Positions 17,756 to 63,914 of a DNA stretch of 64,000 nucleotides are shown here, piece by piece (the first letter of the stretch is position 1; every line of letters starts with the position of its first letter). The position numbers and the translations under genes are program-made. The stretch comes from Macrostomum lignano (lineage: Eukaryota), in NCBI GenBank assembly GCA_002269645.1, contig NIVC01001491.1, positions 124,001-188,000 of the forward strand, given 5' to 3'. Under the pieces are notes generated by a model. The model was given only the letters and a program-made list of their open reading frames with translations. It made no database searches and was not told the origin of the DNA.

Positions 17756-19704
17756 TCAGCCTTCATTCAGAGATGCTTGAACACCAGCGCTACCGGTTGA
17801 GAAGTGAGCAACCTCTCGAACTGCACTATTTTGAGCCAAAACGGTGCGCGCAACGCTAGGGATATTGGTGCTCAACTTGATTGATCCGAACGTTTGCTTA
17901 TCCTGCTCCACTGAAATAAGAAAGATTGTGTTATAAAAGAAACTGCCAGTGGTAGGCCTGTAAAATTATTGAATTCAATCATTTCATCGTTGTGCTTACG
18001 TTTGAAAGTTTTATCCTTGATGTCACCCTGAGCAAAGTGCTCGCCGAGATTTATCACAGTATTGCAGAAGGGCACTTTTAATGGTGAACTATCTGAGCAG
18101 CACAGCCGAATCGCTACATGCAGCTCTTTGTCGGGCAATTTCTGAAAGCTGTAGTTGAATGTTGCCATGTAGTTGAACTGGATTTCTAGTTCATCGCCAC
18201 TGCGCTTGCACTTGTTAGAATTCGACAATTCTACTTTTGCTGAGTAGTTCCAGTTCCAGTCAGAATTCATTTTAAATCCGACGGAACAGTTCGTTGCATC
18301 CGAGGGGAGAATTTCCTTTTGAAACTTTACGCTGACAATATTCAGATTGCAAGTTTTTGTTCGGGCAGCTCGTATGTAGAGCTGCATCATTTCCTCCGTG
18401 ACGCTAGCAAAGTCGGATTGCAGCCTTGTCGTTTCATGAGCTGCTGGCACAGCCGCTGCCACCGCTGCCGCATCTTCATACTTGGCAGAGTCAGCAGCCG
18501 GCCCCAGCTTCTTTGAGGCCGCCGCAGCAGCTTGAATATCGTCGAAGTCTAGAGCCGTTTTCAACGCATCGATTTGACCAGTTATATCGGCCTCTGAGAA
18601 TTTCGGAGCTAATTCCGATTCAACAACTTTACAAAGGCTTTCTAACTGCTTTAACCGTTCGCCGTAAAAGTCTTTCCAATCGGACAGAAGTTTTGCTTTT
18701 GTCTTCGCCAACCTTGCCGCCTTGCTTGCGGCTGTTATCAGCGACTCGAACTCGGCCTAAATGAGAATTTTAGTTCAACTTTGAATTCTAGCTTCGGGAC
18801 GCATCATTTTATGTGTAGAATATTTAAATAGCCGTTTAAAGGCTTTTGTCACTCGTCCGGTAGTAATAATAAAAAAAGAATTATTTTTTCTGCAACGATT
18901 AAGAAAGCCTATTAATAAAAATTAAAAAAAATGTTTTAAATAAGTAGTTATTGCATCTAAATGCCTCTAATTTACAGGCATTTGGATGGCGAAATTTCAA
19001 CTAAATTTCGTTTTAACAAACTGCTTTACCATTGTAGTAATACTTGGAGTACTAGAAAAACAGCCTTCAAGTTAATTGGAAACCTGTTTACAGATTTACG
19101 TGTGAGACGCTGAAAAATCCACGTACTAAAAACGGTTTGTCGGTATCTAGGTATGCAATGGATTTCGAAGCAAACTTACTTGAAATAGAAGTCGATCGTC
19201 GCTATAATGTAAACCGCAAAGATTCCGATCGCAGTGCTCGCAGAAGCGCATCGAAGGTTTCCCGCATGGTCGCTGTTGAGCATCATTTTCTAAGGCTTCA
19301 CATGGAGGCTTCTGGCTGTTTGTTTGTCCTGTCAAATCCTTTGGCGCAGCCTTGGCCGCCGCAACCAGGATGCGCAGCTGATAGTTCTCAACAGGTCTTC
19401 GCAAGTTCTCCTTGCACAGCGGGCATTTCGCCTCCCTGGGTCCTGAGCTGCTAACAAAACCTTTGTAGCAGGCCAGGCACAGTGAATGGTGATTCGCGCA
19501 CACATAGTGGGGGTTATTAAAGAAGTCGAGACACACTGGACAGGTAACATCGTTCCTGTCGATTTTGGAATTTTGACTGCCAGCTGAAAAACAGATAATA
19601 AGATAAGCTAAAGTTAATCCCACAGAGAATTAATATTATGCTGCAAGCTAAACTGCATTTAAAATTTTGAAACTCAGTAACTTACCTCCGCTTGAACCGC
19701 TCAT
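17756..19704 (-). CDS. TRIM-like gene A: RING + B-box-like + coiled-coil + putative C2-like domain (~444 aa; exons 19704-19686, 19583-19180, 18756-18000, 17910-17756)
   Basis: All four exons have GT/AG boundaries with consistent phases (1,0,1) and total 1335 nt. RING CPVC..NPHYVCANHHSLCLAC..CPLC; B-box-like C..C..CEHCDRNLCGLH. The last exon adds LEQDKQTFGSIKLSTNI after KTFK. The C2 call is inferred from the beta-strand pattern. Confidence 0.8.
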
Positions 19705-20637
19705 TGCAGTGTCAGTTAACTCAGCTCTTAGGTAAAACACTTCGAAAGAACTGCTTTGCCGGCTCTATATGTATTATTCTTGCCGCATGTACATTAAACC
19801 TCACACAGCCTACACACAATTTATTTTTAACGCAAGCACTCTTCTCCTTCGGCAAGCTTTTCATTTTAAACACAATTGCATTGAGGCATCATTCAGACGT
19901 GCTTTTCTGCGCATGCAAACTTGTGCTATTATGCTTTCTTTTTGAGTAAGAATGGCCTTTCACATTGATGCGAGACAAACTGAAAATGAAATGGGTTACT
20001 GGCATCTAGTAGCTGGCTAAAAATAAACCTGTGGTCTGAAGGAACACTAGAAAATTCAAGAAAATGTGTGTGTGTGTGTGTGTGTGTTTGACGAATTAAA
20101 TTCGGTAATTTAGGCAATACACTGCAGATTTAATAAATTTATTAGACTCATAATTATAATTTCGGATAGCAACCGATATATTGGATACAGATTAAGCAGT
20201 AACGGGGCAAAGACTACTAAAGTAGCGCTCGAAATCTATGGAAATGTTTTGAATATCAATAGAGCCATGAGAAAGGCACAGCATATCAAAATACGAACAT
20301 TTGAGTCTGCCTCCAATAGAAAGCAATAACAATTGCTGTGCAGAAAATATGAAAGCTTCCTATCTCCGTAGTCTATTTTTCGGCGAAAAGTGGCCTTCAA
20401 AACTTTTTCCATGAAACGTGAGTGTCTCGGCCTGTGTATAGGTTGCTTTAGTTGTCCTTGTTACGAGGCTCCAAAGCGTGGGTGAGGAAATTATAATTTC
20501 CCTCAACATAAGGAACCGTAAAAATTTTGGAATTTAACATAAATGTTCAAAATAAATACTACTTCAACGCGCATGGTAAGTAGTACGGTATACTGTACGC
20601 AATTTGATAAAATTTTAATAACGCCTCATTATTTTTC

Positions 20638-20695
20638 AGTATCGTACCGACAGTACCGACAGTATCGACAGTACTGACAGTACCGACAGTATCTA
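20638..20695. repeat. Short seed array of the GACAGTA(T/C)C 9-mer
   Basis: Same unit as the large array at 22344-23255. Confidence 0.85.
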
Positions 20696-20973
20696 GTAGC
20701 TACTAACAATACTCATGTTAATCGATAAAAATGCCAGACGACCGCTATTTTAAAAGCTAAAGCAAATCATCATTACAAAGTTTTAATTTAATATCCTGCG
20801 TGCACCAATCCAACCCAGCTCTCTGGTAAAAAAACACTCACTTCGATCATTTTTGACATTTGACCATTAAAACTTTAGCGAATTGCACCACATGAAAACA
20901 AGGGGTTCAGAAACTGTAAATACAACAGCCCCGAGCCGGTTCAAGAGTCACTTCTCGGTTCCCAAAAATGAGA

Positions 20974-22343: not shown

Positions 22344-23255
22344 CAACGACAGTATCGACAGTATCGACAGTATCGACAATACCGACAGTACCGACAGTAT
22401 CGACAGTACCGACAGTATCGACAGTATCGACAGTATCGACAATACCGACAGTACCGACAGTACCGACAGTACCGACAGTATCGACAGTATCGACAGTATC
22501 GACAATACCGACAGTACCGACAGTATCGACAGTACCGACAGTATCGACAGTATCGACAATATCGACAGTATCGACAGTATCGACAATATCGACAGTATCG
22601 ACAGTGTCGACAGTATCGACAGTATCGACAGTGTCGACAGTATCGACAGTACCGACAGTACCGACAGTATCGACAGTATCGATAGTAGCGACAGTACCGA
22701 CAGTGTCGACAGTATCGACAGTATCGACAGTGTCGACAGTATCGACAGTATCGATAGTACCGACAGTACCGACAGTATCGACAGTATCGACAGTGTCGAT
22801 AGTACCGACAGTATCGATAGTACCGACAGTACCGACAGTATCGACAGTATCGACAGTATCGACAGTATCGACAGTGTCGACAGTATCGACAGTACCGACA
22901 GTACCGACAGTACCGACAGTATCGACAGTACCGACAGTATCGACAGTACCGACAGTACCGACAGTACCGACAGTATCGACAGTACCGACAGTATCGACAG
23001 TACCGACAGTACCGACAGTATCGACAGTACCGACAGTACCGACAGTACCGACAGTATCGACAGTACCGACAGTATCGACAGTACCGACAGTACCGACAGT
23101 ATCGACAGTACCGACAGTACCGACAGTACCGACAGTATCGACAGTACCGACAGTATCGACAGTACCGACAGTACCGACAGTATCGACAGTACCGACAGTA
23201 CCGACAGTACCGACAGTATTGACAGTAACGACAGTACCGCCAGTACCGACAGTAT
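22344..23255. repeat. 9-bp minisatellite (GACAGTATC/GACAGTACC), ~100 units
   Basis: Directly visible; unit length divisible by 3 explains the stop-free TV[DG] ORFs. Confidence 0.97.
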
Positions 23256-23345
23256 AGATACTCAACAGTAGATACTCAACAGTATTATAGTTTTAGTTCA
23301 TTAGTCAGAGTACTTCAGTGTGCAAGTCGATGCAGTGGAAGTCCT

Positions 23346-24236: not shown

Positions 24237-24765
24237 GGTGTCTTGAAGAGCCTTGAAATTAAGTTGAGAAATTTTTCAATAACTTGGCTTCGTTGCTGTG
24301 AATTGATTTCTGAGAGCGAGATAGCTTAAATATTTCTATCCATAGCCAATCAGATGCCAGAGTCGACAGCCCAGACTTCATGCTAATCAATGGCCAATTC
24401 GCCATCTAAGTCAAGGACTTTTACTGCATAGGTAATTTTTCCCCCGCTCAAGATTTTATCTTGGATTGCTCAAAATCCTGAAAAATCCTTTCGCTCTACT
24501 TTAGTAGGCACAAGTGTGTATGTTGAAAGTAATTACGAAAGAATGCGATATTTTGGACTCAGCTTCTACGGAGCATGAGACGACGGCTTCCAATAACATG
24601 ACTAAGTTAGGTTTAGCCAATACGGAGAAGGTAAAGGATACTTAAAGTACATCGTAAAAGGCTTTTTAATCCACATGCACTGCCGAACAACAACTGATCG
24701 ACCAAGCTTTAGGGATCAAAGATAATTTTCAAACAAGTTTTTATACAGACCATTAAACTAAAAAT

Positions 24766-25677
24766 ATGAATAACTTTCTCCCACTAATTGTACTGCTCTA
24801 TAACGTCATATTCAATATTCATTTTGCAACATCAACTGCCTGCAGCTCTAAAAGGCTCGAATACAAAAAATATGGCTTCCTGCCCAACTGCTCCGAGTAC
24901 CTAACTCTGAGCACAGGACGCTCTCAAGACTGCGTCATGGCTGCAGCTGTGTCTCCCGTCCAGTCTGCCGCGGTCGTGTCTACTTCCGAGGCCGAATGTC
25001 ACGTGACCACCGCCCAGTGTCATCGCTACCTCCTGTGCTCCACCGACTGTCCCTACACTGTGCTCATGCCTGCCAGTATGCTCAACAGCCTCGAGCACAT
25101 CGTGATGAGCGTGAAGAGCGGCTGCGGTTTTAAGGTGTGGGACGTGCTGACTGGGTCGGCATTGCCACCTGACCCTGGTGTCCTGCCAGCTCACCCAGGC
25201 GCCGCCGACATACTGGACGCCTTCCGCTCGAACGTTCTCGACGACATTCAGCGCCTGATATCCGGTCTGACTTTCAAGCAGCTCATCGTGCAACTGTACA
25301 AGAGCTCCGCTGTGGTTGTGAGGCTCGTGTTCGATGTCGGGACGAACTTCGCCAGTGTCAACCTGACGAACTGGTTCAGAAAGGAGCGTCTCGTACAGAG
25401 CTTTCCGGTCACCAACCTCGCCAACATGAGCACGAACGTCTTCAGCATCAAATGAGAAAATAGAGGCTCGTTTCAGAGACGTTTTTTTGTCAACTTTAAC
25501 TATGGTGGCTGCAATAATGACCGCGGGCTCATGGCAGTCTTGGATTCCAACGATGACTATTGCGCAGCATACCAATACTCACAGCCGATTCCTCGAATCG
25601 TGTTTAGTTCGGATCCCAGTCGCACAATGGCGACGACAATTCAGGATGCCGAACATTTTGCCATTTTGGCGCGCTAA
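24766..25677 (+). pseudogene. Secreted protein paralogue 2 with a single in-frame TGA (25453-25455)
   Basis: The frame continues without shift after the TGA: FSIK*ENRGSFQRRFFVNFNYGGCNNDRGLMAVLDS...AEHFAILAR*, colinear with paralogue 3 where the aligned codon is GGC (Gly). Confidence 0.8.
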
Positions 25678-28450: not shown

Positions 28451-29315
28451 TTACCTTTGTCAGAAGCCAGGTCTTGAGACAAGAATTTGGCCTCCAGGGT
28501 CTTCAGGTGCATACGCGTAGAATATTTTGAGTTTCTATAGAAGCCTTCTAATTTCAGCAAAGTTACTGTAAATTTAAAGTGCCATGAAATTTATTTATTA
28601 GCTACCTTATACAGTTGATTCAATGTAGTTTATTCGGCATTTTAATTTCGACTTGGGACAGAACTTTTGCATGCACTGGAGCGCATTCCTTCGGGCAACT
28701 GGCACTTGGAGTTCTACGAGCTAATTAGACTCGTGCTGTTTATAATATAAATTTACTGAGACAACTAGGAACATTTTTATGATGCCTTATTTTTTAGGAC
28801 GGTCAGGACCATGTGCTGATGTTGAATTACGTTGGGCAGCATAAGAGATAAAATACTTCTAATCCTTCTTTAGGAACAATGAACATGGAATTAATGGGGA
28901 TTATGGTGGCAGGGGAAAATTCTCTTAAGTATTATGTTGGAAGATATTCGAGCTCATTCGAAACCCCCATACTACCGATATCTGTAGTAATAACGAATAT
29001 AGAATCCACGCAATTACGAAGGAAGCGAATTATTCCCCATTATGCTTACCACTTGTCTACCCAATCAAGTACCCCCGAATTGAAGCAGGAGTTGATGAGC
29101 AGGTTGCAGCAGCCGGAGGCTTTTTGTTAGATTTCCTCATTCGCTGCGTCAATCTTCGCCAATGAATGCCAAGGCATCACAGGAGAGTCTACTGATACAG
29201 ATAAATACCAAAGTCCACAGTAAGCTACAACATCCCGCGTTTTCGCTCCCACAGCGGCAAAAAGAACGATTTCTGCATGTAAAGCTTTGCTGTTTTGCTT
29301 ATCTATTCAGAAATA

Positions 29316-30230
29316 AAAATGGGAACTCTACGTCTCATAACGCTAGTATTATATGCGATCGTGAGTACATTCTCTTCGGAAGTGATTGCTGATTGCACCC
29401 ATAAGCAATTGCAGTACAAGCGACACGCATTTCGTCCGAACTGCTCTGACCTGATGACGCTGAGCACAGGAAGTGCTCAAGATTGCGTTATGGCTGCAGC
29501 TGTGTCTCCCGTCCAGTCTGCCGCGGTCGTGTCTACTTCCGAAGCCGAATGTCACGTGACCACCGCCCAGTGTCCTCGCTACCTGCTATGCTCCACCGAC
29601 TGTCCCTACACTGTGCTCATGCCTGCCAGTGTACTCAACAGCCTCGAGCACATCGTGATGAGCGTGAAGGGCGGCTGTGGTTACAAGATATGGGATGTGC
29701 TGACTGGGTCGGCATTGCCACCTGACCCTGTTGTCCAGCTGGCCCCTCCCAGCGCAGCTGCCCTGCCGAACGTCTTCCGCTCGAGCGTGCTGGACGACAT
29801 GCAGCGCCTGATCTCCGGTCTGACCTTCAAGCATCTCATCGTGCAGCTGTACAAGAGCTCCACCGTGGTTGTGAGGCTTGTGTTCGATGTCCGGACGAAC
29901 TCCGCCAGTGTCAACCTGACGAACTGGTTCAGAAAGGAGCGTCTCGTACAGAACTTGCCGGTCACCAACCTCGCCAACATAAGCACGAACTTCTTCAGCA
30001 TCGAGGGCGCCACTGACTATACAAACTTGAGAAGATTTTTCATTAACTATAGCTACGGCGGATGCGACATTGACAAAGGGTTTATGGCTATTCTAGATTC
30101 GAAAAATGATGTTTGCTCCATGTACCAGTTTTCAGAGCCGATTCCTCGCATTGTCTTCAGTTCAGATCCGACAAAGTCGATGGCCTCAACACTTCAAATT
30201 GCCGACTACATGGCTATTCTAGTGCGCTAG
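29316..30230 (+). CDS. Secreted Cys-rich protein of unknown function, paralogue 3
   Basis: Start probably MGTLRLITLVLYAIVSTFSSEVIA (signal peptide); intact to IADYMAILVR*. Confidence 0.87.
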   Translation, partial: KMGTLRLITLVLYAIVSTFSSEVIADCTHKQLQYKRHAFRPNCSDLMTLSTGSAQDCVMAAAVSPVQSAAVVSTSEAECHVTTAQCPRYLLCSTDCPYTVLMPASVLNSLEHIVMSVKGGCGYKIWDVLTGSALPPDPVVQLAPPSAAALPNVFRSSVLDDMQRLISGLTFKHLIVQLYKSSTVVVRLVFDVRTNSASVNLTNWFRKERLVQNLPVTNLANISTNFFSIEGATDYTNLRRFFINYSYGGCDIDKGFMAILDSKNDVCSMYQFSEPIPRIVFSSDPTKSMASTLQIADYMAILVR

Positions 30231-31260: not shown

Positions 31261-31875
<615 letters not shown>

Positions 31876-32824: not shown

Positions 32825-34114
32825 TCACTCGCAGACAGCGTACACGTCGAACTCGTCGTTACAAACGCCGATGAGGTCGTCAATGCCGCCGCAAGTGCCC
32901 ACCATCGTGCCAACAATGGTATCGATAGCACTTTTCGCCTTGTCAATTTCTCTCCTTTGTTCGTCAGTCGGCGGAGGTCCGACATTCTCAAGGCCGAAGG
33001 TCGCTTTGGAGGCCTCTGCCAGACCCCGCAGCTGGTCAAATTTGGCTCTGGCGGCTCTCTGGTCATCAGAAGCGAGCGCTGCTTGCAGGGCGGCCGCCTC
33101 CGCCCGCTTGCGAACTGCCGAAGCGGCCCAGTCGGCCTTCGGTGTGGCGGAGTTCAACAGGTCCTGAAGGCGCTTCTTTTCCATGTCGAGAAACTCAATC
33201 AGACCCACGATGAGGCTGTTCCAGGGCTGCAGTGAAGCGTTGACTCGGTCAGCCTGTGCAGTTTGCTGCTGCACCCGATCGACCAGATTCGTACAATCGG
33301 CCTTGCGTTGAATTGATTTATTAAAGTTTGAAATATTGTATAAAAAGTGTAAATAAAGACTACTTCTGAAATTCAAAATTGCTAACTGTTGAGTCGACGT
33401 AAAAAATTCCAGTATTTGCAGCGGCAGAATGCTCTCGTACTTGACGTTTCATGCAAAGCAAGCAGAACAGGGAATAAACGTCAAACATTCCACTAGAGGC
33501 AAATTGAAACGACTTTAATGCTGACTTTTACCTCGAACTGCATCCAATGAATGCTGAAGTGCCGGCTGCACAGCCGCCTGTCGCAGTGCCTGCACTTGAC
33601 GAAGACAGGGATGGAGCACTGGCCAGCTTCGTCCTTCCACCGGCAGGTGGCGCCCTCTTGGGGTATCAGGTGAGAGGAACTGATGAGCCTCTCCATTGTG
33701 CTGTTCTGTAGCGGTTGGGTGCTGAGCTGGCTCCTGCATATTGGACAAGTGCTGGCTTCCCGAAGAAGCCGCTCGTAGCAGGGACGGCAGAGCGTGTGAT
33801 GACTCGCACACACGTAGAGAGGGTCAGTGAAAGTTCCCAAACACACAGGGCATTCTAGGTCTTTGTTAGTTTCTTCACCTGATTAAGATTGGATCGAATT
33901 GTAGAATGAGCAAAATCTTTTGAAAAGCACCAATTATTCCACAATAAAACGACTAATCTTATATATTATATTATAGCAGTGCATTGTAATACATAGTAGG
34001 GCCTTAATATAGTGCAAACCAATTTGAAAACTAACAAATCAGCATAAAAAATTTACCTGCATCGGTTTCATATTGACTGTAACAAAGGTTCAAATATACT
34101 CTTGAATCAGCCAT
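32825..34114 (-). CDS. TRIM-like gene B (exons 34114-34057, 33878-33532, 33301-32825; ~293 aa)
   Basis: RING DLECPVCLGTFTDPLYVCASHHTLCRPC..CPIC; B-box-like C..C..CRHCDRRLCSRHFSIH; phases 1/0 as in gene A. The exon 3 acceptor (aag) is weak. Confidence 0.78.
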
Positions 34115-38990: not shown

Positions 38991-39104
38991 CGTGAAAAAG
39001 CCGATGCAGTTCGCACTTTGCTATGGTAGACAAGTAAGTTTGTTTTGAAGTAGCCAACGATAGGACCAAGAAAACGCAAGGCCGCGGCTGCCCACTAGAC
39101 AGCA

Positions 39105-39290: not shown

Positions 39291-39339
39291 AAGGTACTTT
39301 CTAATGTATTTAAAAAGGTAAACTAACTCAGCTAGAGGC

Positions 39340-40594: not shown

Positions 40595-41451
40595 TTATTC
40601 TGGGATGCCACCGCAAGTTTTAGTTGCAGTGTCGATTACGGTGTCCAGCTTTGATTTACAAGCTTCAATTTCCTTTTTCTGCTCACTGGTTGGAGGCGAC
40701 CCGAAAGCTTTCGATTCCAGCTTGGGCGCTTCAGCAGTAGCAGCTTTCAGCCGGTCTGAGATGGCTTTGGCTTCCTTTAGTTGGAAAGATTGAAGGGATT
40801 TTTTCAGGCCCTCCGTCTCAGCCCCTCGGGAGGACCCGGCAGCTGCCTGCTCCAGCCTCTGCTCTGTGGCTCTCAGCAGCTTCTCCAGGTGCTCTTTTTT
40901 CTTACCGATAAATTCGATAAGATTTTTTATTTGAGCTTTCCAAGGCTGCAGTTTAGCGCTGACTTGTTCGCATTCCTTTGCGTCCTTCTCCACTGTGCTT
41001 AACAGGTTCAGGCATTCAGTCTGAAATATAAGCGTTCCGTTTTATTAATTTGAATTTGAATAAATATTAAATATGTTAGCTTCCATTACTTGAAACTTCA
41101 ACCGATGATCGCTGAAGTGCACATCGCAAAGATTCTTGTCGCAGTGACCGCAGTTGACAAGGACCGAGTAGGAGCATTGGGTTTCGCCTTCGCCTTCGCC
41201 TTCGCAGGTGGCGCCGAGCAGCGCTTTCGAACAGAAAACCTTAATGAGCTTGGCCATGGCGGCGTCCTGCTTAGGTGTGATCAGCTTCTCTCGGCATTCC
41301 GGACACTTTGCTGCATAAGGGGTTGTCTCTAAAATGCCTCTGTGGCATTCCCGGCACACGGTGTGGTGGTTCGGGCACACGAAGCAGGGATCAGTAAAAA
41401 TGGTTTTGCACACTGGGCAGCGCAGGTCTTTTATGTCTACTGAGCTCACGT
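40595..41451 (-). CDS. TRIM-like gene C (exons ~41451-41090 and 41020-40595); start codon not found
   Basis: RING, B-box-like and helical exons intact with a 69-nt phase-0 intron (FQ|TECLNLL). GTG/CTG occur where gene D has ATG. Confidence 0.72.
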
Positions 41452-41743
41452 CTAAAACTTTAGGGGTCAGGTATTGAATAGCGATTTTAAAATCCCAGTT
41501 AACGCTGTATTATATTCACATTCACCATAGTATTTAGAAACTAAAAAGGATAAAGATTAAGATTATTGTGCGGTCCGAAGGTGAGTCCAGTCACAAGAGA
41601 GGGACTAAACCAATTAATAAAATGCTGCATTCACATTTTATCTAAGCTTTGTGTCACAAATTGCGTGCGTGACACGTGATAGAAATCGTCTTGAGGTATC
41701 CTTGACCTCGTCGAAAAGCAACCAATTAGTGATGCCAACCGTA

Positions 41744-42111
41744 TTTATTTATTTTTTTATTAGAGGCAGGGGGTTGTGTGCACCCTGGCGCACTTTAAGC
41801 GACATAGGCACACAACCGGCGAGAGGCATTACTGCCCATTCCGCCGACTCCCCTGAGCAGGCATACAAGCGCGCGGATACGTACGCAGGCACACACTCAC
41901 ACAGGAGTGTACAGCGGCCCTAACTTTATATTATCGTTAGGCATGTACACTTCACTGCGCCTTGGGGGGTTGGCCCTCAAGGCCGTTAATTGTACGAGCA
42001 GAGCCAAGCCGAGATTCCAATTCAGCCCCAAATTAATGTGACTGCACTTGGAATCGAGCCTGGGTCGCTGGCACACCAGAGCAGCTGCGCTACCGCTGGG
42101 CTACGGCCCCC
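41744..42111 (-). mobile_element. Young tRNA-derived SINE family B with 14-bp TSD
   Basis: TSD TGATGCCAACCGTA at 41730 and 42112; head GGGGCCGTAGCCCAGCGGTAG...GGCTCGATTCC; A-rich tail; nearly identical to 61696-62071. Confidence 0.9.
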
Positions 42112-42329
42112 TGATGCCAACCGTAATTGATCATAGAAACTTAGTGGGGTCAGTAAAAGTATTTGTATTGAGGCGGACAAATGCCTGAGGGCGATTCGCA
42201 TCAGTCAGTTCAATCTAGGAGGCGGATGTTGTGATTGGTGTAGAGATTACTCTGAAGTAGACGGAAGTTTGATGGGGCTTGGAGTTCCAGGGTGGAAATC
42301 AGTTTCACTCCAGCTCGCATGCATAAAAG

Positions 42330-45060
<2,731 letters not shown>

Positions 45061-47256: not shown

Positions 47257-48234
47257 CTAATCAATTTTTCTAAGTTTTTGGGAGCCAAAATATGGCAAAA
47301 GTTTTCTAATGCGAGTTTGCTTTGGGGCGAATAAACCCGCCCAAAAAACCGGTAAAAAAAATATACGAGCTACCGAGCAATTTTCACGTGTAGTCTCGAT
47401 TATGGTGCTCAGCTTTGCTTTACAAGCTTCAATTTCATTTTTCTGCTCCTCGGTTGGAGGCAACCCTAATTTTTGCGAGTCCAGCTTTGGCGCTTTAGAA
47501 AAAGCAGATTTCAGCCGGTCTCCGATGGCTTTGGCTTCCTTTAGTTGGTCAGATTGAAGGGCGGTTCGCAGGCCGTCTGCCTCAGCTCGGCGAGAGGACC
47601 CGGCAGCTGCCTGCTCCAGCCTCTGCTCTGTGGTTCTCAGCAGCTCCTCAAGGCTCTTTTTTTCACATCGATAAATTCGATAAAACTGGCGATCTGAGCT
47701 TTCCAAGGCTGCAGTGTAGCGCTGACTTTGTCACATTCCTTCGCGTCTTTCTCCACAGATTCCAACAGGTTCTCGCATTCAGTCTGGGAAGGAAAGCGTT
47801 CTGTTTTATTAGTTTTCGTGTTAATACCTGCTAAATACTTTAGTTTACATTACCTGAAACTCCAATCGATGCTTGCAGTAGTGAAACTCGCAAAAATACT
47901 GATCGCAGTGACCGCAATTTTTGGAGACTGAGTTGGGGCACTGGGTTTCGCCTTCGCGTACCTGGCAGGTGGCGTCGGGTGGCGGTTTTGAGTGGAATTC
48001 TTTGACGAGCCTGGCCATGGCGGCGTGCTCCGTCGGTGTGCAAAGCATCTGTCGGCACACCGGACACCTTGCGTGTCCGAAAAGGTGCGTCTCCAAATGG
48101 CGTTTGTGACATTTGCGGCACAGAGTGTGGTGATTCGGGCACACGAAGCACGGATCAGTAAAGATGTCTTTGCACAGCGGGCACTTCAGGTCTTCGTCCT
48201 CTCTTGAACTCATATCTAAAACTTCAGGGGTCAT
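47257..48234 (-). pseudogene. TRIM-like gene D: frameshift in an A7 run and foreign 3' end
   Basis: RING/B-box exon intact (to 47854); acceptor 47783. The frame shifts at T7 47657-47663 (IDV|EKKSLEELL), and homology ends after ETTRENC. Confidence 0.72.
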
Positions 48235-48539
48235 TTGTTAACTAAGTATATTAAAATCCATGTTAACATTCTAGAATATGCTAAGCTACTATGTAGAAAC
48301 GGAGAAGGGCATAGATGAAGAGTATTATTGAGCGGTCTGAAGGCAAGTCCAGTTCCTAAAGAGGGACCTATCCAGTTAATCGATGTATAGCACGAGTTGA
48401 AAAGTGGTTAAAGCCTGCTCCAGCTAATCAGCTTGTATGTGCCATAAGTAATTTCCAGTACTGTATAGATTTGTCTATCGCTTCGCTTCGCTCGCCTCGA
48501 GACCATTATATGCGACCTCTGACTTTCTGACCACAGAAT

Positions 48540-49940
48540 GCGCATTATAAAGCTATTATCTTATACTTAAAACTCCCTTGGTTAATGCAACTGCACATGA
48601 AGATGCAATGAAGAAAATAAAGAAGCGCACCTAAAGCATTTCACCATCCTTTTACTTTATCGCCAAGAATATACCGGACTGCATTTTCAATAATTGTGCA
48701 GACAAAATTTCAGACAATACAGCTTGTAGGAGTGTTTTAACTACCTTTGGGAAGTGACCTTCCGCATTTCGATTTTGCGTAGTGAGCCATATAGTTTTTG
48801 TCTGCGGTCCAGGTCGTTGCGGAGAGCAGCTAAATTTTTTGCCAGAAAAACTAATGCGAAGCAGAGGCTTTGGTAAATGAAATGCCTGAGAAAGCGGTGC
48901 AGCCTTGTTTAGAACTCTGATTCTGCGTCCAGCATTGCTATGGTCGCTTCAAGCTATTTTATGCATTCAGAGTTCATGTATGTACAGAAGAGACGAGTTT
49001 GAAGCAGAGAAGAGTGACGAAATTTATATTTTTTATATTTTTATCTTTGAGGTACATTATTTTACATCTGTCTTTTATTCTTACCATTTAGCATCATGGT
49101 CCTTGAAGAGACGATTTTCATCTTGAAAGTAACCGGACCTCAATAGCCGCTACCTTCGCTCCCCTGATCTTTAAGTGCAAATTACAGATGAGCAATGCTT
49201 TTGATTGTGCTTATGTTTGGTTTAGCTTTCTCGTAGTTCTGATAGCTAATGTCTTCACTTTAGAGTGGGTTTTTCTCTGAATCTGAAGTTAAATGGTGGA
49301 GTTGTTAATATACGAACTACATCCGTCCGTACGCGCGTGATCTCTCTAACCTTAAATTCTCTATATCTGTCTGGCCCTCCTATTCCCGCTGTATCTGCGT
49401 CTCTTCAGGACTTCTCCTAGACTGTTAAAGTTTAACAAAAATGAGAAATTATTTCAAATCAGCCGGACTAGATAAGACCAGTCTAAGAAAAGGACGTGTT
49501 TAACAACAATGGTTGATGCCTTCAGCCTGGGAAACATCGTTTCAAGAGCGGACTGCTTGAATCCAGTGAATTCTGCCAATTTTTACAGGTACGAGTGCTC
49601 TAACAAGCAGACCTAATCTCTCTGTCCGCCCTGTGGCTAAGTTTCTTAGAAACGCAAAATCGCCGGAGAGGTGGCTCTGCAGGCTCAAATTTGTATCCAT
49701 CTATACTAACTAGATAGGCAAAACAGTATAGAGTGTTGAGAAAAAGCATTCAGAGCACACATTTTCTTTCTGTAATGACTAAAAATAAATGTTACGAATG
49801 ATTGTGAAATATCTGCTTTGTCTTGGACAGAAAAAGACAGATAAAGACAAATTGTGGTGCTACTTTTGCAGATCCTTGTAAGTAGTTAATATAGTAAATA
49901 TAAAAATACTACTGCATTTATGCAACCAGCGCATTTAATT
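48540..49940. repeat. Spacer block X, copy 4 (most complete)
   Basis: Contains all landmarks in order except GAGTTGACGTCACCAA. Confidence 0.75.
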
Positions 49941-49961
49941 TTTAAAGTGGAGCCAAATACT

Positions 49962-50363
49962 CTATTCTCTCACTGGGAGAAGCAGGCTCACTGGGAGAAG
50001 CAGTGGATGTCTCTTCCCTGTGCTCTGACCTTCTATAGGAATCTCTGACCTTCCACCGCAAATTCGTGTTGCAGTCCCGATTATGGAGACCAGCTTTGCT
50101 TTACAAGCTTCGATTTCTTTCTTCTGCTCATCTGTTGGAGGCGACCCAAAATCTTGCGACTCCAGCTTCGGCGCTGCAGCAGGAGCAGCTTTCAAGCGGT
50201 CTGCGATGGCTTTGGCTTTTTTTAGCTCACCAGATCGAATGGAGGCTTTCAAGCCGTCTGCCTCAGCTCGACGGGAGGACCCGGCCGCTGCCTGCTCCAG
50301 CCTCTGCTCTGTGGTTCTCAGCAGCTCCTCCAGGCGCTCTTTTTCCACATCGATAAATTCGAT
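49962..50363 (-). pseudogene. TRIM-like fragment E (coiled-coil exon only)
   Basis: IEFIDVEKERLEELLRTTEQRLEQAAAGSSRRAE...ICGG. The upstream part is replaced at ~50364 by block X sequence, with no RING exon. Confidence 0.8.
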
Positions 50364-50364
50364 A

Positions 50365-52260
50365 CTTGAGAAGGCGATGCAACCTTGTTAAGAATTCCAT
50401 TTCTGCTTTTGTCATTTCAAGCTGTTTCAAGCATTCAGAGCTCATGCATTTACAGCGGAGACGAGTAGCAGTAGAGAAGTGTGACGAAGTTTTTATTTTT
50501 ATTTTTGAAGTACTTTATTTTACACTTGTCTTTTATTCTTATCATTTAGCATCTTGCCTTCTGAACAAACGATTTTCACCTAACAACCAACCTGTAGCTG
50601 CTACATGTACTCCTCGCCTTCTAATCTTTGAGTGCAAATTACAGAGAAGCAATGCTTTTGATTGTGCTCATGTTTGGTTTATCTAGTTCTTTTAGCTTAT
50701 CTCTCCACTTTAGAATGGGCTCTTCTCTAAGCCTTAAGTTAAACGGCAGAGTTACGAGCTAGTTAATAACCAAGCTGAATTCGTTCGTACGTCCGGTCTC
50801 TTCGACGTTTTATGCAGGGCCTTTTCTATTCTATCTATCCCTATCCCTATTCTATCTATATCCTGGTGTATACAGAAGATTCGTGGAGTTTAGAGTTTTA
50901 GTTTCAAAATCAGTTGAGTGCAAATTGCCTGCATACGAGTAGAATGAAAAAATTATGCTTAAAACTCCACTTCTAGTGCTATGGCTTGTAAATTCAGTTG
51001 CAATGCAGATGCAATGAAAGTAATAAAAGAAGTCCTCTTTGGCATTTTACCACCTATAACTTCATTTCGAAGAGCTGTATTGTCACTAAATTGGCAGATC
51101 AAATTAAATAATTTTGATTATTGAAGCTCGTAGGAGTTTTTTATCTATCTTTGAGAAGTAACGCTGTAGGACAGTGATACACTTATTCCTGCGGCCCAAG
51201 TTGGTGCTGAGAGCAGATGGGTTAAATAGCTTCTAATGGGAAGCAGAGGCTGAGGTAATTAAAATTCTTGAGAAAGCGGTGCAACCTTGTTTAAAATTCC
51301 GTTTTTCCGTGCTGTTGTCGTTTCAGTTATTTTATGCATTCAGAGTACATGTGTGTACAGTGTGGAGACGAGTTGCAGCAGTGAAGGGTGACGAAATTTA
51401 TGTTTTTTACTGTGAGCTACTTTGTTTTACATCTGTCTTTGATTCTCACCGTTTAGCAGTTTAGCTTTGAAAAGACGATTTTACCTTACAACCTCTAGCT
51501 GAATGTATAGCTGAATGTATTTTGCCTTTTTAAATTTTAGTTCAATTCCATGGGAGAAATGCTTTTGGTTTTGCTTGCGTTTAGGTTAACCAGTTCTCTT
51601 AGCTAATGTCTTCATGTCACGGCGGGCTCTTATCTGAGCCTTAAGTTGAACAGGGGATTCAATTAATAAACGAGCTACATCCGTCCGTACGCCTGATCAA
51701 ACTCTTTGTCCTTGAATGCCGGCCCCTCTTGTCTCCTTGCAGCATCCGTCTCTTTAGGGCTATTTCAAGATAACGTAAGTTAAAAAAAAACAAGCAATAA
51801 TGTCATAGCAGCCAGACTAAAAAATCAGTGTTAGAAAAGGACGTGGATAGCAAACAAGGGTTGAGGATCTTTATAAGCCTGAGAAGCCTCGTTTTAAGTA
51901 CAGACTGCTTGAACCCGGGGAATTCTGTCAATTCTTACAGGTACGGGTGCTCGTATATAATCTTTCTGTCATCTCTAAAAATATACTTTACAAATGATTG
52001 TGAAATATCTGCTTTGTCTTTATTGACAGAAAGGAGACAGATAAGGATAAATAGTGGTGCTAGTTTCGCAGATCCTTCTAATTAGTACGTGTATGATTGT
52101 TACTACTGTATTTATGCAGCCAGCGCATATGACTCGACAGTGGAGAAAATTATATGTGAAGTGAGAAGTGTACTGAAGGAAGGTTTTATGATTTTTATAT
52201 AATTTATAGTTTTAATTTATGAAGAGTTGACGTCACCAATAAACTGTTGTTGACACCAAG
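50365..52260. repeat. Spacer block X, copies 5 (50365-50830) and 6 (50940-52260)
   Basis: Two successive occurrences of GAGAA(A/G)GCG(A/G)TGCAACCTTGTT and downstream landmarks. Confidence 0.72.
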
Positions 52261-53002: not shown

Positions 53003-53919
53003 CTATATATCATCATATATAGCCTCTGCATATATCGTATCATCTTCAAAATCATCACGACAGCTCACACCTCCGCAAATTCCTGTAGCGGTCCCGATTA
53101 CGATATCCAGCTTTGCTTTACAAGCTTCGATTTCTTTTGTCTGCTCATCGGTTGGAGGCCACCCGAAATCTTGCGAGTCCAGCTTTGGTGCAGTGGCAGC
53201 AACTTTCAGCTGGTCTGCGATGGCTTTGGCTTGCTGCAGTTGGCTAGATCGAAGGGAGGCTCGCAGGTCGTCTGCCTCAGCTCGGCGGGAGGACCCGGCC
53301 GCTGCCTGCTCCAGCCTCTGCTCTGTGACTCTTAGCAGCTCCTCGAGGCGCTCTTTTTCTATATCGATAAATTCGATAAGACTTTTGATCTGAGCTTTCC
53401 AAGGCTGCAATGTAGCGCTGACTTGGTCACATTCCTTTGCATCTTTCTCCACAGATTTTAACAGGTTCTCGCATTCAGTCTGGGGAGAGAATAGTTTCAT
53501 TTCATTAACTTTCGTGTCAATACCTCCTGTACTTCAGCACAAATTACCTGAAACTTCAATCGATGATCGCAGAAGTGCAGATCGCAAAAATCCAGGTCGC
53601 AGTGACCGCATTTGACAAAGACTGAGTTGGAGCACCGGGATTTGCCTTCAAACATTTGGCAGGTGGCGCCGGGCGGCGGTTTCGACTTGAAAGCCTGGAC
53701 GAGCTTGGCCCTGATGGCATCCTGCTTAGGTTTGGAAAGCATCTCTCGGCACTCCGGACACTTTGCGGGTCCAAAAAGGGACATGTCCGAAATGCGTTTG
53801 TAGCATTCGCGGCACAGCGTGTGGTGATTTGGGCACACGAAACACGGATCAGTAAAGATGTATTTGCACACCGGGCACAGCAGGTCTTCGTCGTCAGGTC
53901 GCTTTTGAGCTTCCATCAT
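53003..53919 (-). CDS. TRIM-like gene F (exons 53919-53548 and 53479-53003; ~282 aa)
   Basis: MMEAQKRPDDEDLLCPVC...; phase-0 intron FQ|TECENLL. The start is provisional because a phase-1 acceptor exists at 53942. Confidence 0.8.
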
Positions 53920-58249: not shown

Positions 58250-60921
58250 TCAGGGTACAAAGCGACGCAGAATCTGCCTGAACGGCTCCTCAGGATGGCC
58301 TCTACCAGCGGCCGAGAACCTTCCAGTCGGTCGAAGGACGCCGCTAGGCGTGAGTATCGTCGAGTCGCCGTGCACCGCCTCTAGAAACGGTCGCTCCATC
58401 TCGTGTCCCAACTCTGTCGCTTTTAAATCGAATTCCTGACCAGATTTTACCGGCGGAGACACCTTCGGCGTCTTAGTCAACGAATTCAAGTTGTGAAGTC
58501 CTCGACGATTCAGTCTGTTGAAGGCGACACTGGCCACTTTTAAGTCGCCAGTGTCCAGAGCTTCGCGCAACTCGACAGCATCGGCAGCCGCGGAAGTTGA
58601 CAGGGCAGCTCCGCGCGAGGAATCCGCCATCTCGGCGGCCATAGCGGAGAGCGCATCGAATCGCTGCCGCTGATGCTCCAGGGCATCGCGACAGTCGGCA
58701 AAGAGGCGACTCCACTGCTGTAGAGCCGACTGGCGCTGCTTGGCTGACTGGTTTGCCGACTCTGCCGCTCTAATTAAAGTGCTGGACTCCTCCTGAAAGA
58801 AAATTTGACAAGTTGACATGTAGAACATGAACACTAATTGCAGCAATATCCGTTGTAAACCGTTGCTTTGTTAAAATTTGAGCGAAAAATGTTAGTTTTA
58901 GTTTTGGAACTTTAGTTTTATGTAATAATAATTAATTACCTCGTGCACCTGCCCAAATAGGCAGATGTGCAACCGACAGCTCAGCCGCAGCTATTGCGCG
59001 GCGCATCTGAAGGCTGCGTACGGCTGTTCAGTCCAAGGACTGGGGGGGGGGGGGGGTCGCCACATGCACCCTCAATTACCCCAGCTAATGCTGGCACCCA
59101 TTTTACAGCTGGGTGAACTGAAGCAATGCAGAGTTAAGTGCCTTGCTCAACGACACAAATTGTTCCGAGTGGGTTGAGAATCGAATCGAGGATCGACCTT
59201 TCAGTCGTGAGTTTCGACGCTGTAACCATTAGGCTACAACCCCTTTGTTGCAGTTTATTAATATTTGTTGTTACTTTGGTAAAACAATAGGAATCGGAAA
59301 TCCTATTATAGTTTAGAATTTATAGCTTTGCATACGAGTATAAGTAGCAAACTACGAGCATAAGGTATAAATACGGTATTCCACCCAAATAATTTTTATT
59401 GTCAAAGCTGTCAATCAGTTATAATTGTGTTCCCCGTGTAAAGTCAACAGATCATCAAGTACTCCTAAAAAGATATGTAAAGTCAGCTTAATGAAAGCCA
59501 ATCTTAGATTCATGAAAGGTCTAGAAATGGAGGATCAAGGCTGAAAGCATTGCAGCAAACCTGGGAGAAATCCGAATGACCATATTTTTTAAGGATTCAA
59601 AATGGTCTAGCGCTTATTAAGGTATTCAATCGCTGTTTATTAAAAAAGTGTTTGTTATGCTACTGATTGAGGGAAATACCAATGAAAGAAAACATACGGC
59701 TATTGATACGGATCGAACTGCTACAAACCGATGACTACTTCTACCGATTGATCTGTTACAAACCAATGACTACTTCTACCGATTGATCTGCTACAAACCA
59801 ATGACTACTTCTAGCGATTGATCTGCTACAAACCGATGACTAATTCTACCGATTGATCTGCTACAAACCAATGACTACTTCTAGCGATTGATCTGCTACA
59901 AACCGATGACTAATTCTACCGATTGATCTGCTACAAACCGATGCCTACGTCTACCGATTGATCTGCTACAAACCAATGACTACTTCTAGCGATTGATCTG
60001 CTACAAACCGATGACTAATTCTACCGATTGATCTGCTACAAAACAATGACTACTTCTACCGATTGATCTGCTACAAACCGATGACTACTTCTACCGATTG
60101 ATCTGCTACAAACCAATGACTACTTCTACCGATTGATCTGCTACAAATCAATGACTACTTTTATCGATTGATCTGCTACAAACCGATGCCTACATCTACC
60201 GATCGAGGACTACTAAATTTAAACAACTATAAAAGATTGAACGACCGTACAGCAATCATGCGCTTTCGTTAAACTAACTCTGAACGTTTTAACTTACGAA
60301 GTTACGATTATAACCCACCTTAAATCGCATCTGATCGTTAGCGTAATGCATCTCGCACAGGTTCCGATCGCAGTGCTCGCACCTGGCAAATACCTGCTGC
60401 AGACAGGCACAGTTACCGGCACCCTCTCGAGCGTCGCATTTCGCGTGATGAAGCCACTGCTCCCGCCGACGCCAGCTGTCTACCACGCCGCGGACGTGAG
60501 GATTCTCCAGCGGACGATCGACCAGACGCTCGCGACAAATCGGACAGCGGGCCACCTCGCCAGACGAGTGACATTTGGTTGCGATAGCCTGGTGACAGCC
60601 GCGGCACAGAGTGTGATGACGGCTGCACACGAAGCACGGATCAACGAAGGTGCTCAAGCACACTGGGCATTTCAGCTCCTCTTCGAGATCTTTGACTGCC
60701 GGAATCGAAACGTATTTTTGCATTTAAATAGACAGTTTCAAAACTTGAGCACTTTGCTCAGGTTTGTTGCGTTTTAAGATTGATTCAATTTGATCATAGT
60801 CTACCGTAATACCGAAAGACTTAATTGTTAAATGTCATGGGTTTGAATTTTTACAACAAAAAACTTTACAATGCAGAAACAACAACTTAGATAACTTACA
60901 GGTTCCACTTTCTGCAGACAT
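58250..60921 (-). CDS. TRIM-like gene G (exons 60921-60900, 60695-60319, 58792-58250; ~313 aa)
   Basis: The micro first exon MSAESGT|gtaag is phase 1 like gene A. RING and B-box-like exon present; 1.5-kb phase-0 intron FK|EESSTLIR. Confidence 0.82.
58921..59243 (-). mobile_element. SINE family A, copy 4 (intron of gene G)
   Basis: Same core and tRNA head as copies 1-3. Confidence 0.85.
59721..60205. repeat. 35-bp minisatellite (CTACAAACCGATGACTACTTCTACCGATTGATCTG), ~14 units, intronic
   Basis: Contiguous units with variant positions. Confidence 0.95.
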
Positions 60922-61695
60922 AATCGCAGGCCTAGTCATAGTCCTTCTTTATAGTAAAGGTACTTTAGATTGAAACAATTGCAAGGTTGAGTTAGTTGCA
61001 GGAAAAAGTGTCACCTCAACAAAGATGAATGCTCTTCACATGGCCTGAATGCTTTAAGAGGAGGAGGCCTCTTGTGTTCTCTGAGCAGACAGAAGTTTAG
61101 TTCTCACTCTGGTCTGTACACTGGGAATATAGTACATTCACTTACGAGTACAGCTGGGTTAGGGTGGACTAGAAAGAGATTGCAGCTCAGTGAGTATATA
61201 TGGAGTACAGTAAAGGTTTGAGAAGCTACACTGCAGACACCTCAGACTGTACGCGGGCACGGAAATTGAAAAGTTTATTGTTTGAGACCAGTGAACTGTA
61301 CTTACTCGGAATGCCTTATCAAACTATGAAAAATTACTGAAGTAATTCAGGCAAAAGCGCTGAGTGCAATTCCAGGCACTGAGAGATAATATGTATTCAA
61401 AATAAATTTTAACCTTTTTGTTAATGACAGATGTTTCGTATCCTCTCAGTTACTAAATATGCAGTACTCCGAAGTACGAATTCAAACTATGTTCTGGAAA
61501 TGCCAACAACTGCACTACCGCCAACTTCATTCTCTTTTTGTGTCTTTTATCAAACGTTACCATTTTTAAAGTCTATCAAAATAGATAGTAATATTATATT
61601 CTGATGCCACACTTTCGAGGACATTGACTCACAATTGACTCGCAATGTGGCAATGCGCGGAATCAAACAACTTGTCGAGGTGCATTATAGCGCAT

Positions 61696-62071
61696 TTTTT
61701 TATTTTTTTTATTTTTTTTTTAGAGGCAGGGGGGTTGTGTGCACCCTGGCGCACTTTAAGCGACATAGGCACACAACCGGCGAGAGGCATTACTGCCCAT
61801 TCCGCCGACTCCCCTGAGCAGGCACACAAGCGCGCGGATACGTACGCAGGCACACACTCACACAGGAGTGTACAGCGGCCCTAACTTTATATTATCGTTA
61901 GGCATGTACACTTCACTGCGCCTTGGGGGTTGGCTCTCAAGGCAGTTAATTGCACGAGCAGAGCCAAGCCGAGATTCCAATTCAGCCCCAAATTAATGTG
62001 ACTGCACTTGGAATCGAGCCTGGGTCGCTGGCACACCAGAGCAGCTGCGCTACCGCTGGGCTACGGCCCCC
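61696..62071 (-). mobile_element. Young SINE family B copy with 13-bp TSD
   Basis: TSD CATTATAGCGCAT at 61683 and 62074; near identical to the 41.7 kb copy. Confidence 0.9.
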
Positions 62072-62619
62072 TTCATTATAGCGCATAATATCGGTATAAC
62101 TTTTGGCTTTTAATTTAATCGCTTTATTTTTTAATGAAAAGAAACGTTTAAAAGATTCTGACAGAACAAAGCCATGATACCCTGCTGTATGTATATTCAT
62201 ACTGTATAAACAAGAAATTAGACAGGGAGATACAACTGTAGCCATCTATGTTTCGCATTCATGGAGGTGTGCAAATTGTAGATTCACTCTGAAAAATTAC
62301 TCGTAGAAGCTTTCTAGGGATTCAAATTATCAATATTATTCTACGAAAAAAGGAGTTTATATGACTGAATCATCATTCGTCAAGCTTGTTTCTGTTTCTT
62401 TTCAGAAACATGTTCAATTGGATGTGAAAGACTGATCGAAGCTTATATCTTTATAAAACGCCGGCTATGACAAGCTGTATCAAATATGAATTAGATAGTA
62501 CTCGTATTTTTTAAGAATAACGACACCCAGAAGAAAGAATAATAGTTGAAAAAACCAAACTCAACACAAACGTCAGAAAGTAGTTCTCCGTTCATCAATC
62601 ACAACTAATTCTGAATCAT

Positions 62620-63914
62620 TCAATCTGTTGATTTCGTTGCAAAGCTTCGCCAGATCCATTCGCTCATTCGAGTCTCCAAAGGCTTCCAGTTTTGAGTTTT
62701 AAGACCAGCATTGGGCTGCAGAATTGCCGAATTGCCGTGGACCGCCTCTAGAAACGGCCTCTCCATCTCGTCTCCCAGATCAAGGAGTTGTCTAGCGAAC
62801 TGCTGCATGTGCTCGGTGCTCGCCGTCGAGGGTGCCGAAACTCGGCGGCACTTTTGCATTCGCTCCGCCAGGGCCACCTCGCGCTCCACCAGGGCCAGCT
62901 GATCGAAAGCGACTTTCGTCTCGGCCAGATTTCCGGCGTCCATGGCTTCGCGAAGTTTCGCCCGGGCGGTCGGCAGAGCTTCGGGCGACACGGAAGACGC
63001 CATCTCAGATGCCATTCTGGAGAGGCCTTCAAAGCGGTCTTGCAGCTGTCGCAGTTGGCTGCTGCACTGGTCAAACCAGTCAATCCACTGGGTGAGATCA
63101 GCCTCCTTACTCTCTCCATAGTTCAGCAAATTGTCGGCTTTGGAAATCAGTTCTTGGCATTGCGTCTAGATGAAATGGAAATTAGTAATTGTTAACGAAG
63201 TAGCTCGGAACGATTGAAATTTGCAAGTTTTTAAGAGACTTAATGTAGAGTTCATAATTCCCTTGTCGATCGTGAGTGTGAATTCCATCAGATCTACAGA
63301 CATAAGTACAGTTATGATACAAACATAAGTACTTCTGTGTAGTTTCGTTGAGCCAAGGCTATACAGGGTTGCTCATGGGAATGGTTGTTGAGAGGCCGGG
63401 GCTTAGAGTGGGAGGGTTGCTGAGAAATCGAGACTCAATCAATGTGAGGTAAAATCATTCAATCTTTCAATTCAATTTGCAAATTTTCAAACCAATGATG
63501 TTTAATAACATATATTTAATACCTGAAATTCCATTCGATCTTTGCTAAAGTGCAGATCGCACAAGTTTCGACTGCAATTGTCGCACCAGCTAAGCGCAGG
63601 TATCCCACACTCGCCACCACTTTCCGATTCGGCCTGACAGTTGGCCTGCTGAATTCGATGCAGACTGTCAATGACAGCTCGAATCTCGGAGTTGTCAACC
63701 GGTCGATCGGTGAGACGCTCTCGACATATCGGGCATCGGCGATCGTTTGAAGCAGCCACACTTTGATAGCAGGCTCGGCAGAGGGTGTGGTGCCGCGAGC
63801 ACACGAAGACGGGGTCTCTAAACGTGTTAAGACAAATCGGGCATTCGAGTCCCTCAGCCAGGCTGCGATTGGCTGCCGCTCGGGAAACGTTTGCGAAGGT
63901 GCGTCGACCTGAAG
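62620..63914 (-). CDS. TRIM-like gene H (exons 63914-63523 and 63165-62620; first exon beyond the window or repeat)
   Basis: EGLECPICLNTFRDPVFVCSRHHTLCRAC..CPIC; C..C..CDNCSRNLCDLH; FQ|TQCQELI; shares EMERPFLEAVHG with gene G. Confidence 0.82.

Follow-up and report, generated by a model that had tools for sequence, protein, structure and literature searches.

A clustered family of divergent TRIM-like genes in the flatworm Macrostomum lignano

The window analysed here is a stretch of 64,000 nucleotides from the flatworm Macrostomum lignano (assembly GCA_002269645.1, contig NIVC01001491.1, positions 124,001 to 188,000 of the forward strand), and positions given without an accession are those of the window. 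Between 17756 and 63914 its minus strand carries seven exons, each of which encodes a RING and a second zinc finger, and one orphan exon for a helical region, distributed over eight gene copies that we call A to H (Table 1); 17756 is the stop codon of copy A and 63914 the acceptor of the RING exon of copy H. An earlier note, made from the letters alone, had described these 46 kb as a tandem array of about eight minimal TRIM-like E3 ligase genes, and the exons that it listed are all present. A six-frame regular-expression scan of the window with the RING motif that the note gave for all copies retrieves six minus-strand matches, and seven once HH-x-[LV]-C is allowed, as opposed to none in 100 shuffles. 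The motif thus holds as quoted for six of the seven RING exons; copy C reads HHTVC where the others have HHxLC, which is its sole departure. The cluster is real, but its contiguity is broken by three unrelated open reading frames of about 310 amino acids between A and B and by a retroelement remnant between B and C. No further related exons were found in the window by tblastn, and an Rfam scan of the window gave 0 matches.

The splice signals are regular throughout the cluster. A GT donor follows straight after F[QEK], in phase 0, in all seven RING exons (GTAAGT, GTAAAA, GTAATG, GTAATG, GTAATT, GTGGGT and GTATTA), as had been proposed, and every helical exon is preceded by an in-phase AG acceptor with a pyrimidine tract. 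According to stop-to-stop frames and three-frame translations, the RING exon also codes for the second finger, and the helical-region exon follows downstream on the minus strand. Transcript-derived paralogs revealed 5' mini-exons, and in the window a short coding exon with an ATG and a phase-1 GT donor was then found in copies A, B, C, D and G, while that of copy H (MSRFRGIQQ) falls outside the window, about 1.8 kb from its end; the usual gene layout is therefore a mini-exon, a RING/finger exon and a helical exon. A start codon supplied by a spliced leader, considered for the copies that have no ATG in the RING exon, became unnecessary once the mini-exons had been located. The division into three subfamilies (A; B to F; G and H) is borne out by the motif PPT.EQ..EI in copies B to F, by EMERPFLEAVHG in copies G and H, and by neighbour-joining, which groups the copies as {A}, {G,H} and {B,(C,D,F)}.

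Once spliced, copy F encodes 282 amino acids that match the M. lignano GenBank protein BOX15_Mlig005097g1 over the full length at 100% identity, and the genomic locus of this protein agrees with 43003-63919 at 100% identity as well. The GenBank annotation of the assembly was built from RNA-seq via StringTie/TACO and a de novo transcriptome, followed by TransDecoder (PMC5730564). Because copy F equals an RNA-seq-derived protein, its splice model and stop codon rest on transcripts, and its transcript model contains no onward splicing to SPRY, NHL or other domains. Transcript-derived paralogs of other copies are present on other contigs, namely A-type P0004 (444 amino acids), D-type P0003 (295), G-type P0010 (319), H-type P0166 (314) and the C/F-like P0002 (316), and in copy F, as in the paralogs of D, G and H, the transcript-derived model terminates with the stop codon of its helical exon. 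Proteins of the family are already deposited as 'hypothetical protein' or 'RING-type domain-containing protein'. No paper describing the family, or TRIM or RING families in M. lignano, was found in the literature; the names Mlig005097, Mlig013468, Mlig027655, Mlig033057, Mlig019194 and Mlig013276 are not mentioned in the supplements of several M. lignano papers, nor is Mlig005097 in the full texts searched. The supposition that the family is undescribed agrees with this.

The proposed length of about 280-310 amino acids applies approximately to the short forms (282-321 amino acids) but not to copy A or to a ninth member of the family, and with the additional C-terminal domain of these two the family is not uniformly 'minimal'. 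Copy A has four exons and encodes about 444 amino acids, 94% identical to P0004, with some 170 residues after the helical region that are predicted to be rich in beta-strands. The protein P0154/P0011 (446 amino acids) has the same architecture and shares 26% identity with the A-type over its full length, the C-terminal domain included. Its gene is the ninth member, BOX15_Mlig013276, and lies 2.1 kb past the window end on the plus strand (NIVC01001491.1:190143-192685), head-to-head with copy H; their 5' ends are about 380 bp apart, which suggests that the two genes share a bidirectional promoter. TRIMs normally carry a substrate-binding module at the C-terminal position, and the orphan domain of the long forms is a candidate for a new recognition module. 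It has no Pfam match (best B9-C2, at an expectation value, E, of 0.14), nothing under E 0.17 in a profile search of the PDB, only an M. lignano fragment as a match in a word-indexed search of a large protein collection, and no second copy in the window by tblastn. The AlphaFold model of P0004, built on a family alignment of 10 sequences, has a mean predicted local distance difference test (pLDDT) of 52.8, with finger and C-terminal domain unreliable, and a MATH-like fold would still be conceivable for this domain.

The affinity of these genes to TRIMs emerges from profile and fold comparisons. In Pfam, where matches to the window copies were reported at E up to 1, only RING models respond, above their cut-offs for B and H. 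Single-sequence searches against the PDB return almost only TRIM RINGs, with weak E-values; the family profile retrieves the TRIM21 RING at E 2.8e-9 and TRIM72 at 2e-8, the latter in one alignment that runs across RING, finger and coiled coil (positions 7-231). The top 20 profile matches also include TRIM34, TRIM32, TRIM30, TRIM5 and TRIM31, plus the RINGs of BRCA1 and RNF168, and the RINGs of TRIM31 and TRIM56 are both among the PDB matches. The domain is a C3HC4 RING in which all eight ligand positions are invariant and the C3-to-H spacing of x3 stands at the upper limit of the consensus. The 'family-specific RING' of the earlier note is accordingly not retained: this is a typical TRIM RING with flanking helices, in which only that spacing is unusual. 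Two residues by which TRIM21 and TRIM25 contact the E2~ubiquitin conjugate are present in every RING exon, namely the hydrophobic E2-contact position of C-P-[VIL]-C and, directly behind the last Cys, the linchpin R/K.

An AlphaFold model of copy F, built on a 41-sequence alignment of the family and distant TRIMs, reaches a mean pLDDT of 86.3, with the three helices from residue 113 onwards mostly at 85-97. It places in succession a helix at 8-13, the RING, a helix at 68-79, a small beta-containing finger, a long helix at 113-201 and two shorter helices at 205-219 and 235-258. The top ten Foldseek matches of this model are the RINGs of TRIM21, TRIM69 and TRIM25 with their flanking helices (template modelling score 0.65-0.86, root-mean-square deviation 1.4-3.3 A); TRAF and SIAH proteins rank lower, with TRAF5/6 and the RING-ZnF1 of SIAH1 at 19-22. 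Of the elements of the TRIM type, a RING, a B-box (with a deviation) and a long coiled coil with a back-folding helical linker were found. On these comparisons the genes are predicted to form a divergent TRIM (RING / B-box / coiled-coil) subfamily arranged as a lineage-specific array, in line with what had been proposed from the letters.

The element that departs most from this architecture is the second finger. Its pattern, C-x(8-11)-C-x7-C-x2-C-x4-C-x2-H, is found in all seven RING-bearing copies, in agreement with the earlier note, and C87, C96, C104, C107, C112 and H115 (P0001 numbering) are invariant. In a MAFFT alignment with distant matches, the spacing C-x7-C-x2-C-x4-C-x2-H-x3-[HD] corresponds to ligands 2 to 7 of a CxxC-type B-box; only the first ligand is displaced, in that its distance from the second, 2 residues in a B-box, is 8-11 in the window copies and 4 in P0015 and in an intact copy on contig NIVC01002920.1. 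The profile of the isolated finger matches that of 43 CxxC-type B-boxes in register (hhalign probability 90.8, score 27.6), with a maximum score of 12.7 for column-shuffled controls (n=40), and the HMMER alignments to TRIM21 and TRIM72 extend through it. Among 165 fetched proteins the odd finger pattern is limited to those of M. lignano, including P0015 and P0114. The second finger is, by its pattern and profile, a predicted zinc finger of the divergent CxxC B-box type that deviates in its first ligand.

The family is restricted to M. lignano among the relatives found. An exhaustive HMMER search over 1.84 billion representatives, of the kind that the earlier note had suggested, returned just eight proteins at E below 1e-30, and all eight are M. 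lignano sequences. Behind them come ordinary frog and fish TRIMs with B-box, TRIM_CC and PRY/SPRY; those of the further matches that were checked resemble TRIM2/3 or TRIM59, or are other TRIM-like proteins of M. lignano. Neighbour-joining of the RING-to-coiled-coil region, computed with no bootstrap, unites the array members in one clade with P0015 as sister. Both P0015 and P0114 score above the Pfam NHL cut-off of 20 bits (20.2 and 21.1 bits, respectively). The assertion that the genes have no PRY/SPRY or NHL domain is correct for the window copies, where Pfam gives no PRY/SPRY match and no NHL match at E up to 1, and for the transcript-derived models, but the nearest relatives within the species do carry NHL repeats.

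Copies differ in age and in state. Between subfamilies dS (synonymous divergence, Nei-Gojobori) exceeds 1 and is saturated, with dN/dS (the nonsynonymous to synonymous ratio) of 0.1-0.4, and all zinc ligands are invariant across paralogs at this distance; among C, D and F, dS is 0.2-0.6 and dN/dS 0.42-1.05. Intact, frameshifted and truncated members had been recognised from the sequence and are represented by F, D (one nucleotide) and E. A collinear array is found on a second contig, NIVC01002920.1, whose identity to the window is 95-99%. This contig has a complete RING and helical gene at the position of fragment E (L004 7395-8295), unannotated there, and because the full gene is kept at that position, copy E is the remnant of a deletion of roughly 1-2 kb. 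The same contig has an intact D paralog, P0003, and reads A8 (~11125 of L004) where copy D of the window has the frameshifting A7, so the lesion in D is either very recent or a PacBio homopolymer error. On a third contig, NIVC01000210.1, G, H and the ninth gene are arranged alike and the C/F-like part is rearranged. Duplicated blocks have been described for the M. lignano genome, the assembly of which is highly redundant (PMC5730564).

Table 1. Gene copies of the cluster and other features of the window (aa, amino acids; ORF, open reading frame)
Feature	Position	Strand	Exons and content	Basis or remark
Copy A, long form, ~444 aa	17756..19704	-	19686-19704 (MSGSSG, donor GTAAGT); 19180-19583 (RING and B-box-like finger); 18000-18756 (coiled coil and orphan C-terminal domain); 17756-17910 (tail, stop)	Splice contexts and exon-by-exon mapping of P0004 and P0005
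Copy B, short form	32825..34114	-	34057-34114 (MADSRVYLNLCYSQYETDA); 33532-33878 (RING and finger); 32825-33301 (coiled coil, stop)	Agrees with UniProt model P0009 (321 aa); Pfam RING matches above cut-off
Copy C, short form	40595..42490	-	Probable 5' exon 42475-42490 (MSLLK); 41090-41457 (RING and finger, HHTVC); 40595-41020 (coiled coil, stop)	N-terminus MSLLKVLDVSS present in fused model P0008
Copy D, 1-nt frameshift in A7 run near 47657	47257..48790	-	48745-48790 (MAHYAKSKCGRSLPK); 47854-48215 (RING and finger); 47257-47783 (coiled coil)	Truncated 184-aa product in GenBank
Copy E, 3' fragment of coiled-coil exon, no RING exon	50046..50369	-		tblastn; 77-80% identical to helical exon of F
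Copy F, intact short form, 282 aa	53003..53919	-	53548-53919 (ATG, RING, finger); 53003-53479 (coiled coil, stop)	BOX15_Mlig005097g1
Copy G, short form, ~319 aa	58250..60939	-	60900-60939 (MTRPAIMSAESGT); 60319-60695 (RING and finger); 58250-58792 (coiled coil with EMERPFLEAVHG); 35-bp tandem repeat in second intron	Nearly identical to transcript-derived P0010 on 89-kb contig
Copy H, short form, ~314 aa	62620..63914	-	63523-63914 (RING and finger); 62620-63165 (coiled coil with EMERPFLEAVHG)	Transcript-derived paralog P0166 (314 aa)
Three related ORFs, ~230-315 aa	23349-24275; 24757-25452; 29283-30227	-; +; +	Signal-peptide-like N-termini, conserved cysteines	Between A and B; no Pfam match
Degraded retroelement pol remnant	37367-39020	-	Integrase H2C2 zinc domain and rve core, several frame breaks	Between B and C
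ORF, 184 aa	57036-57587	-	Weak QRICH1-domain match	Between F and G; E 5.8e-4, under Pfam cut-off
Four single-exon tandem paralogs, rhodopsin-type G protein-coupled receptors	3451-4455; 5790-6974; 8788-9834; 14702-15694	+		Upstream of TRIM-like array; last paralog Pfam 7tm_1, 5e-16
ORF	406-789	+	EF-hand-like calcium-binding repeats	By eye
CT-rich minisatellites	1-285; 912-1398			Flank the preceding ORF
(CTAT)x427	42959-44664
(CTGT)x154	31261-31875
9-mer x101	22347-23255
36-mer x20	46332-47063			Just downstream of D
35-mer x14	59707-60203			Second intron of G
Dispersed repeat, ~370 bp, 97.8% identity	41744-42112; ~61704-62072			Upstream of copy C RING exon; between G and H

Two of the neighbouring features call for comment. 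The UniProt model P0008 (806 amino acids) is a wrong fusion of copy C, the pol remnant, copy B and an adjoining open reading frame, and the dispersed repeat of about 370 bp is probably a fragment of a mobile element.

We consider it probable that the cluster represents a Macrostomum-restricted subfamily of TRIM ubiquitin ligases that expanded through tandem duplication at the locus and whose copies are now individually diverging and decaying. The product of an intact gene would begin with a C3HC4 RING of the TRIM type between two short helices. One divergent B-box would come next, its first zinc ligand moved to 4-11 residues upstream of the second where 2 are usual, then a helix of about 90 residues and, folded back on this helix, two shorter ones. 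Such proteins may dimerise via an antiparallel coiled coil, as known TRIMs do, and their RINGs could recruit the E2~ubiquitin conjugate through the residues that TRIM21 and TRIM25 use, leading to ubiquitylation of the protein itself or of bound partners. The two long forms delimit the cluster, copy A on one side and the ninth gene on the other, and their conserved orphan domain would occupy the place where TRIMs have a substrate-binding module. This domain appears to have been lost from the short forms, B to H, which would most likely act via the helical/linker region or by pairing with long forms.

Several observations weigh against this interpretation. Pfam zf-B_box and TRIM_CC match none of the copies, and the isolated finger finds no match in the common CxxH B-box2 (hhalign). 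The alignment behind the confident model of copy F held real TRIMs and may bias finger and helix towards the TRIM fold; with an alignment of the family alone, the finger has a pLDDT of 34-43. The annotation of NIVC01001491.1 has no gene for copies G and H, and the dN/dS values among C, D and F fit relaxed constraint as well as diversifying selection. What the analysis shows is the sequence family with its gene structures, its affinity to TRIMs, its restriction to M. lignano, its transcript support and the differences between duplicated copies; catalysis, dimerisation and biological role are inferred by analogy with known TRIMs.

Other readings of the cluster may be considered. It could be an array of innate-immune or antiviral restriction factors engaged in an arms race. 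Antiviral TRIMs of vertebrates typically form tandem, lineage-restricted clusters that diverge fast, and the array resembles them in its pattern, in the raised dN/dS of its youngest clade and in a copy content that differs between duplicated regions. We nevertheless judge this rather unlikely: no immunity-related expression, induction or interaction data were located in the literature, the short forms are devoid of the usual pathogen-sensing domain, and the same pattern is expected of rapidly evolving reproductive genes, a class reported in Macrostomum (PMC7336406). For a fast-evolving family that is specific to Macrostomum, a role in reproduction is just as plausible.

Alternatively, polyploidy and tandem duplication might have left an array made up mostly of decaying duplicates, RING genes on their way to becoming pseudogenes, whose short forms retain hardly any function or none. 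The frameshift in D, the fragment E, the dN/dS of C, D and F, the missing annotation of G and H and of the counterpart of E, and the redundancy of the assembly would all agree with this. Yet RNA-seq-derived models with uninterrupted reading frames exist for copy F and for paralogs of A, D, G and H, all seven RING-bearing copies have intact splice sites, and, although dS between subfamilies exceeds 1, no RING exon has lost its zinc ligands, its E2-contact residue or its linchpin; moreover, the frameshift in D lies in a PacBio homopolymer and may be a consensus error. A predominantly decayed array is quite improbable.

A bolder version of the ligase hypothesis would see here a self-contained, lineage-born system, in which the orphan domain of the long forms adopts an unseen substrate-recognition fold of about 170 amino acids, the short forms serve as hetero-dimerising modulators or decoys by which the long forms are tuned or redirected, and the variable first-ligand loop of the finger (x4 to x11) provides a diversifying surface for assembly or recognition in place of SPRY; this we regard as distinctly improbable. 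Highly improbable, finally, is a non-TRIM class of RING-plus-zinc-finger proteins (TRAF/SIAH-like, or with an AN1-type finger) that resembles TRIMs through its generic RING: the weak Sina_RING matches of the RING itself, the Foldseek ranks of TRAF5/6 and SIAH1, the negative zf-B_box result and the automatic UniProt name 'AN1-type domain-containing' of the G-type fragment P0024 speak for it, whereas the best sequence matches and all of the top ten fold matches are TRIM RINGs with flanking helices, RING, finger and helix align jointly to TRIM72, the finger alone exceeds its shuffled controls by far in the comparison with CxxC B-boxes, Pfam zf-TRAF, MATH, Sina and zf-AN1 give no match at E up to 1, and the x3-[HD] after C-x2-H fits a B-box and not the x5-H-x-C of the AN1 pattern (C-x2-C-x(9-12)-C-x(1-2)-C-x4-C-x2-H-x5-H-x-C).

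A Macrostomum-restricted TRIM subfamily would add a flatworm case to the known lineage-specific TRIM expansions. It is an ordinary kind of gene-family expansion that holds nothing surprising for a specialist on TRIMs or flatworms. The finger shows that a B-box may diverge to the point of a displaced first ligand and no response from Pfam, and still be recognised by profile comparison. M. lignano offers transgenesis, RNA interference and a recently duplicated genome, in which nearly identical copies are distinguished by a frameshift and a deletion, and the cluster is thus a workable case for studying the birth and death of ligase genes and the role of TRIMs that have no C-terminal domain.

Such TRIMs, which consist of RING, B-box and coiled coil (RBCC) only, include TRIM31 and TRIM56 in human. 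The short forms of the array agree with them in having a RING, one B-box and a coiled coil with nothing thereafter in about 280-320 amino acids, and in a RING with flanking helices that superposes on those of TRIM21, TRIM69 and TRIM25 and keeps the E2-contact and linchpin residues. They differ in the first ligand of the B-box, C-x(4-11)-C and not C-x2-[CH], in a RING with C3-x3-H and not C3-x1-H, in being silent to the Pfam B-box and TRIM_CC models, and in having no orthologs outside M. lignano. TRIM-NHL proteins of the TRIM2/3/71 type are approached from another side: the M. lignano proteins P0015 and P0114 share the odd finger of the array, and P0015 is its sister in the tree, but both carry NHL repeats, for which the window copies give no signal. 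The finger itself finds its best match in the CxxC-type B-box, as carried by the TRIM25-like and TRIM39-like vertebrate matches.

Lineage-specific tandem expansions of TRIMs are known from the finTRIMs of fish and from the mammalian TRIM5/6/22/34 cluster. In those clusters it is the B30.2/SPRY domain that has diversified, whereas the array has no such domain in its short forms, and the C-terminal domain of its long forms is an unrelated orphan. The M. lignano cluster shares with both the tandem arrangement, subfamilies of differing age, the coexistence of intact, frameshifted and truncated members, and a fast divergence of the proteins.

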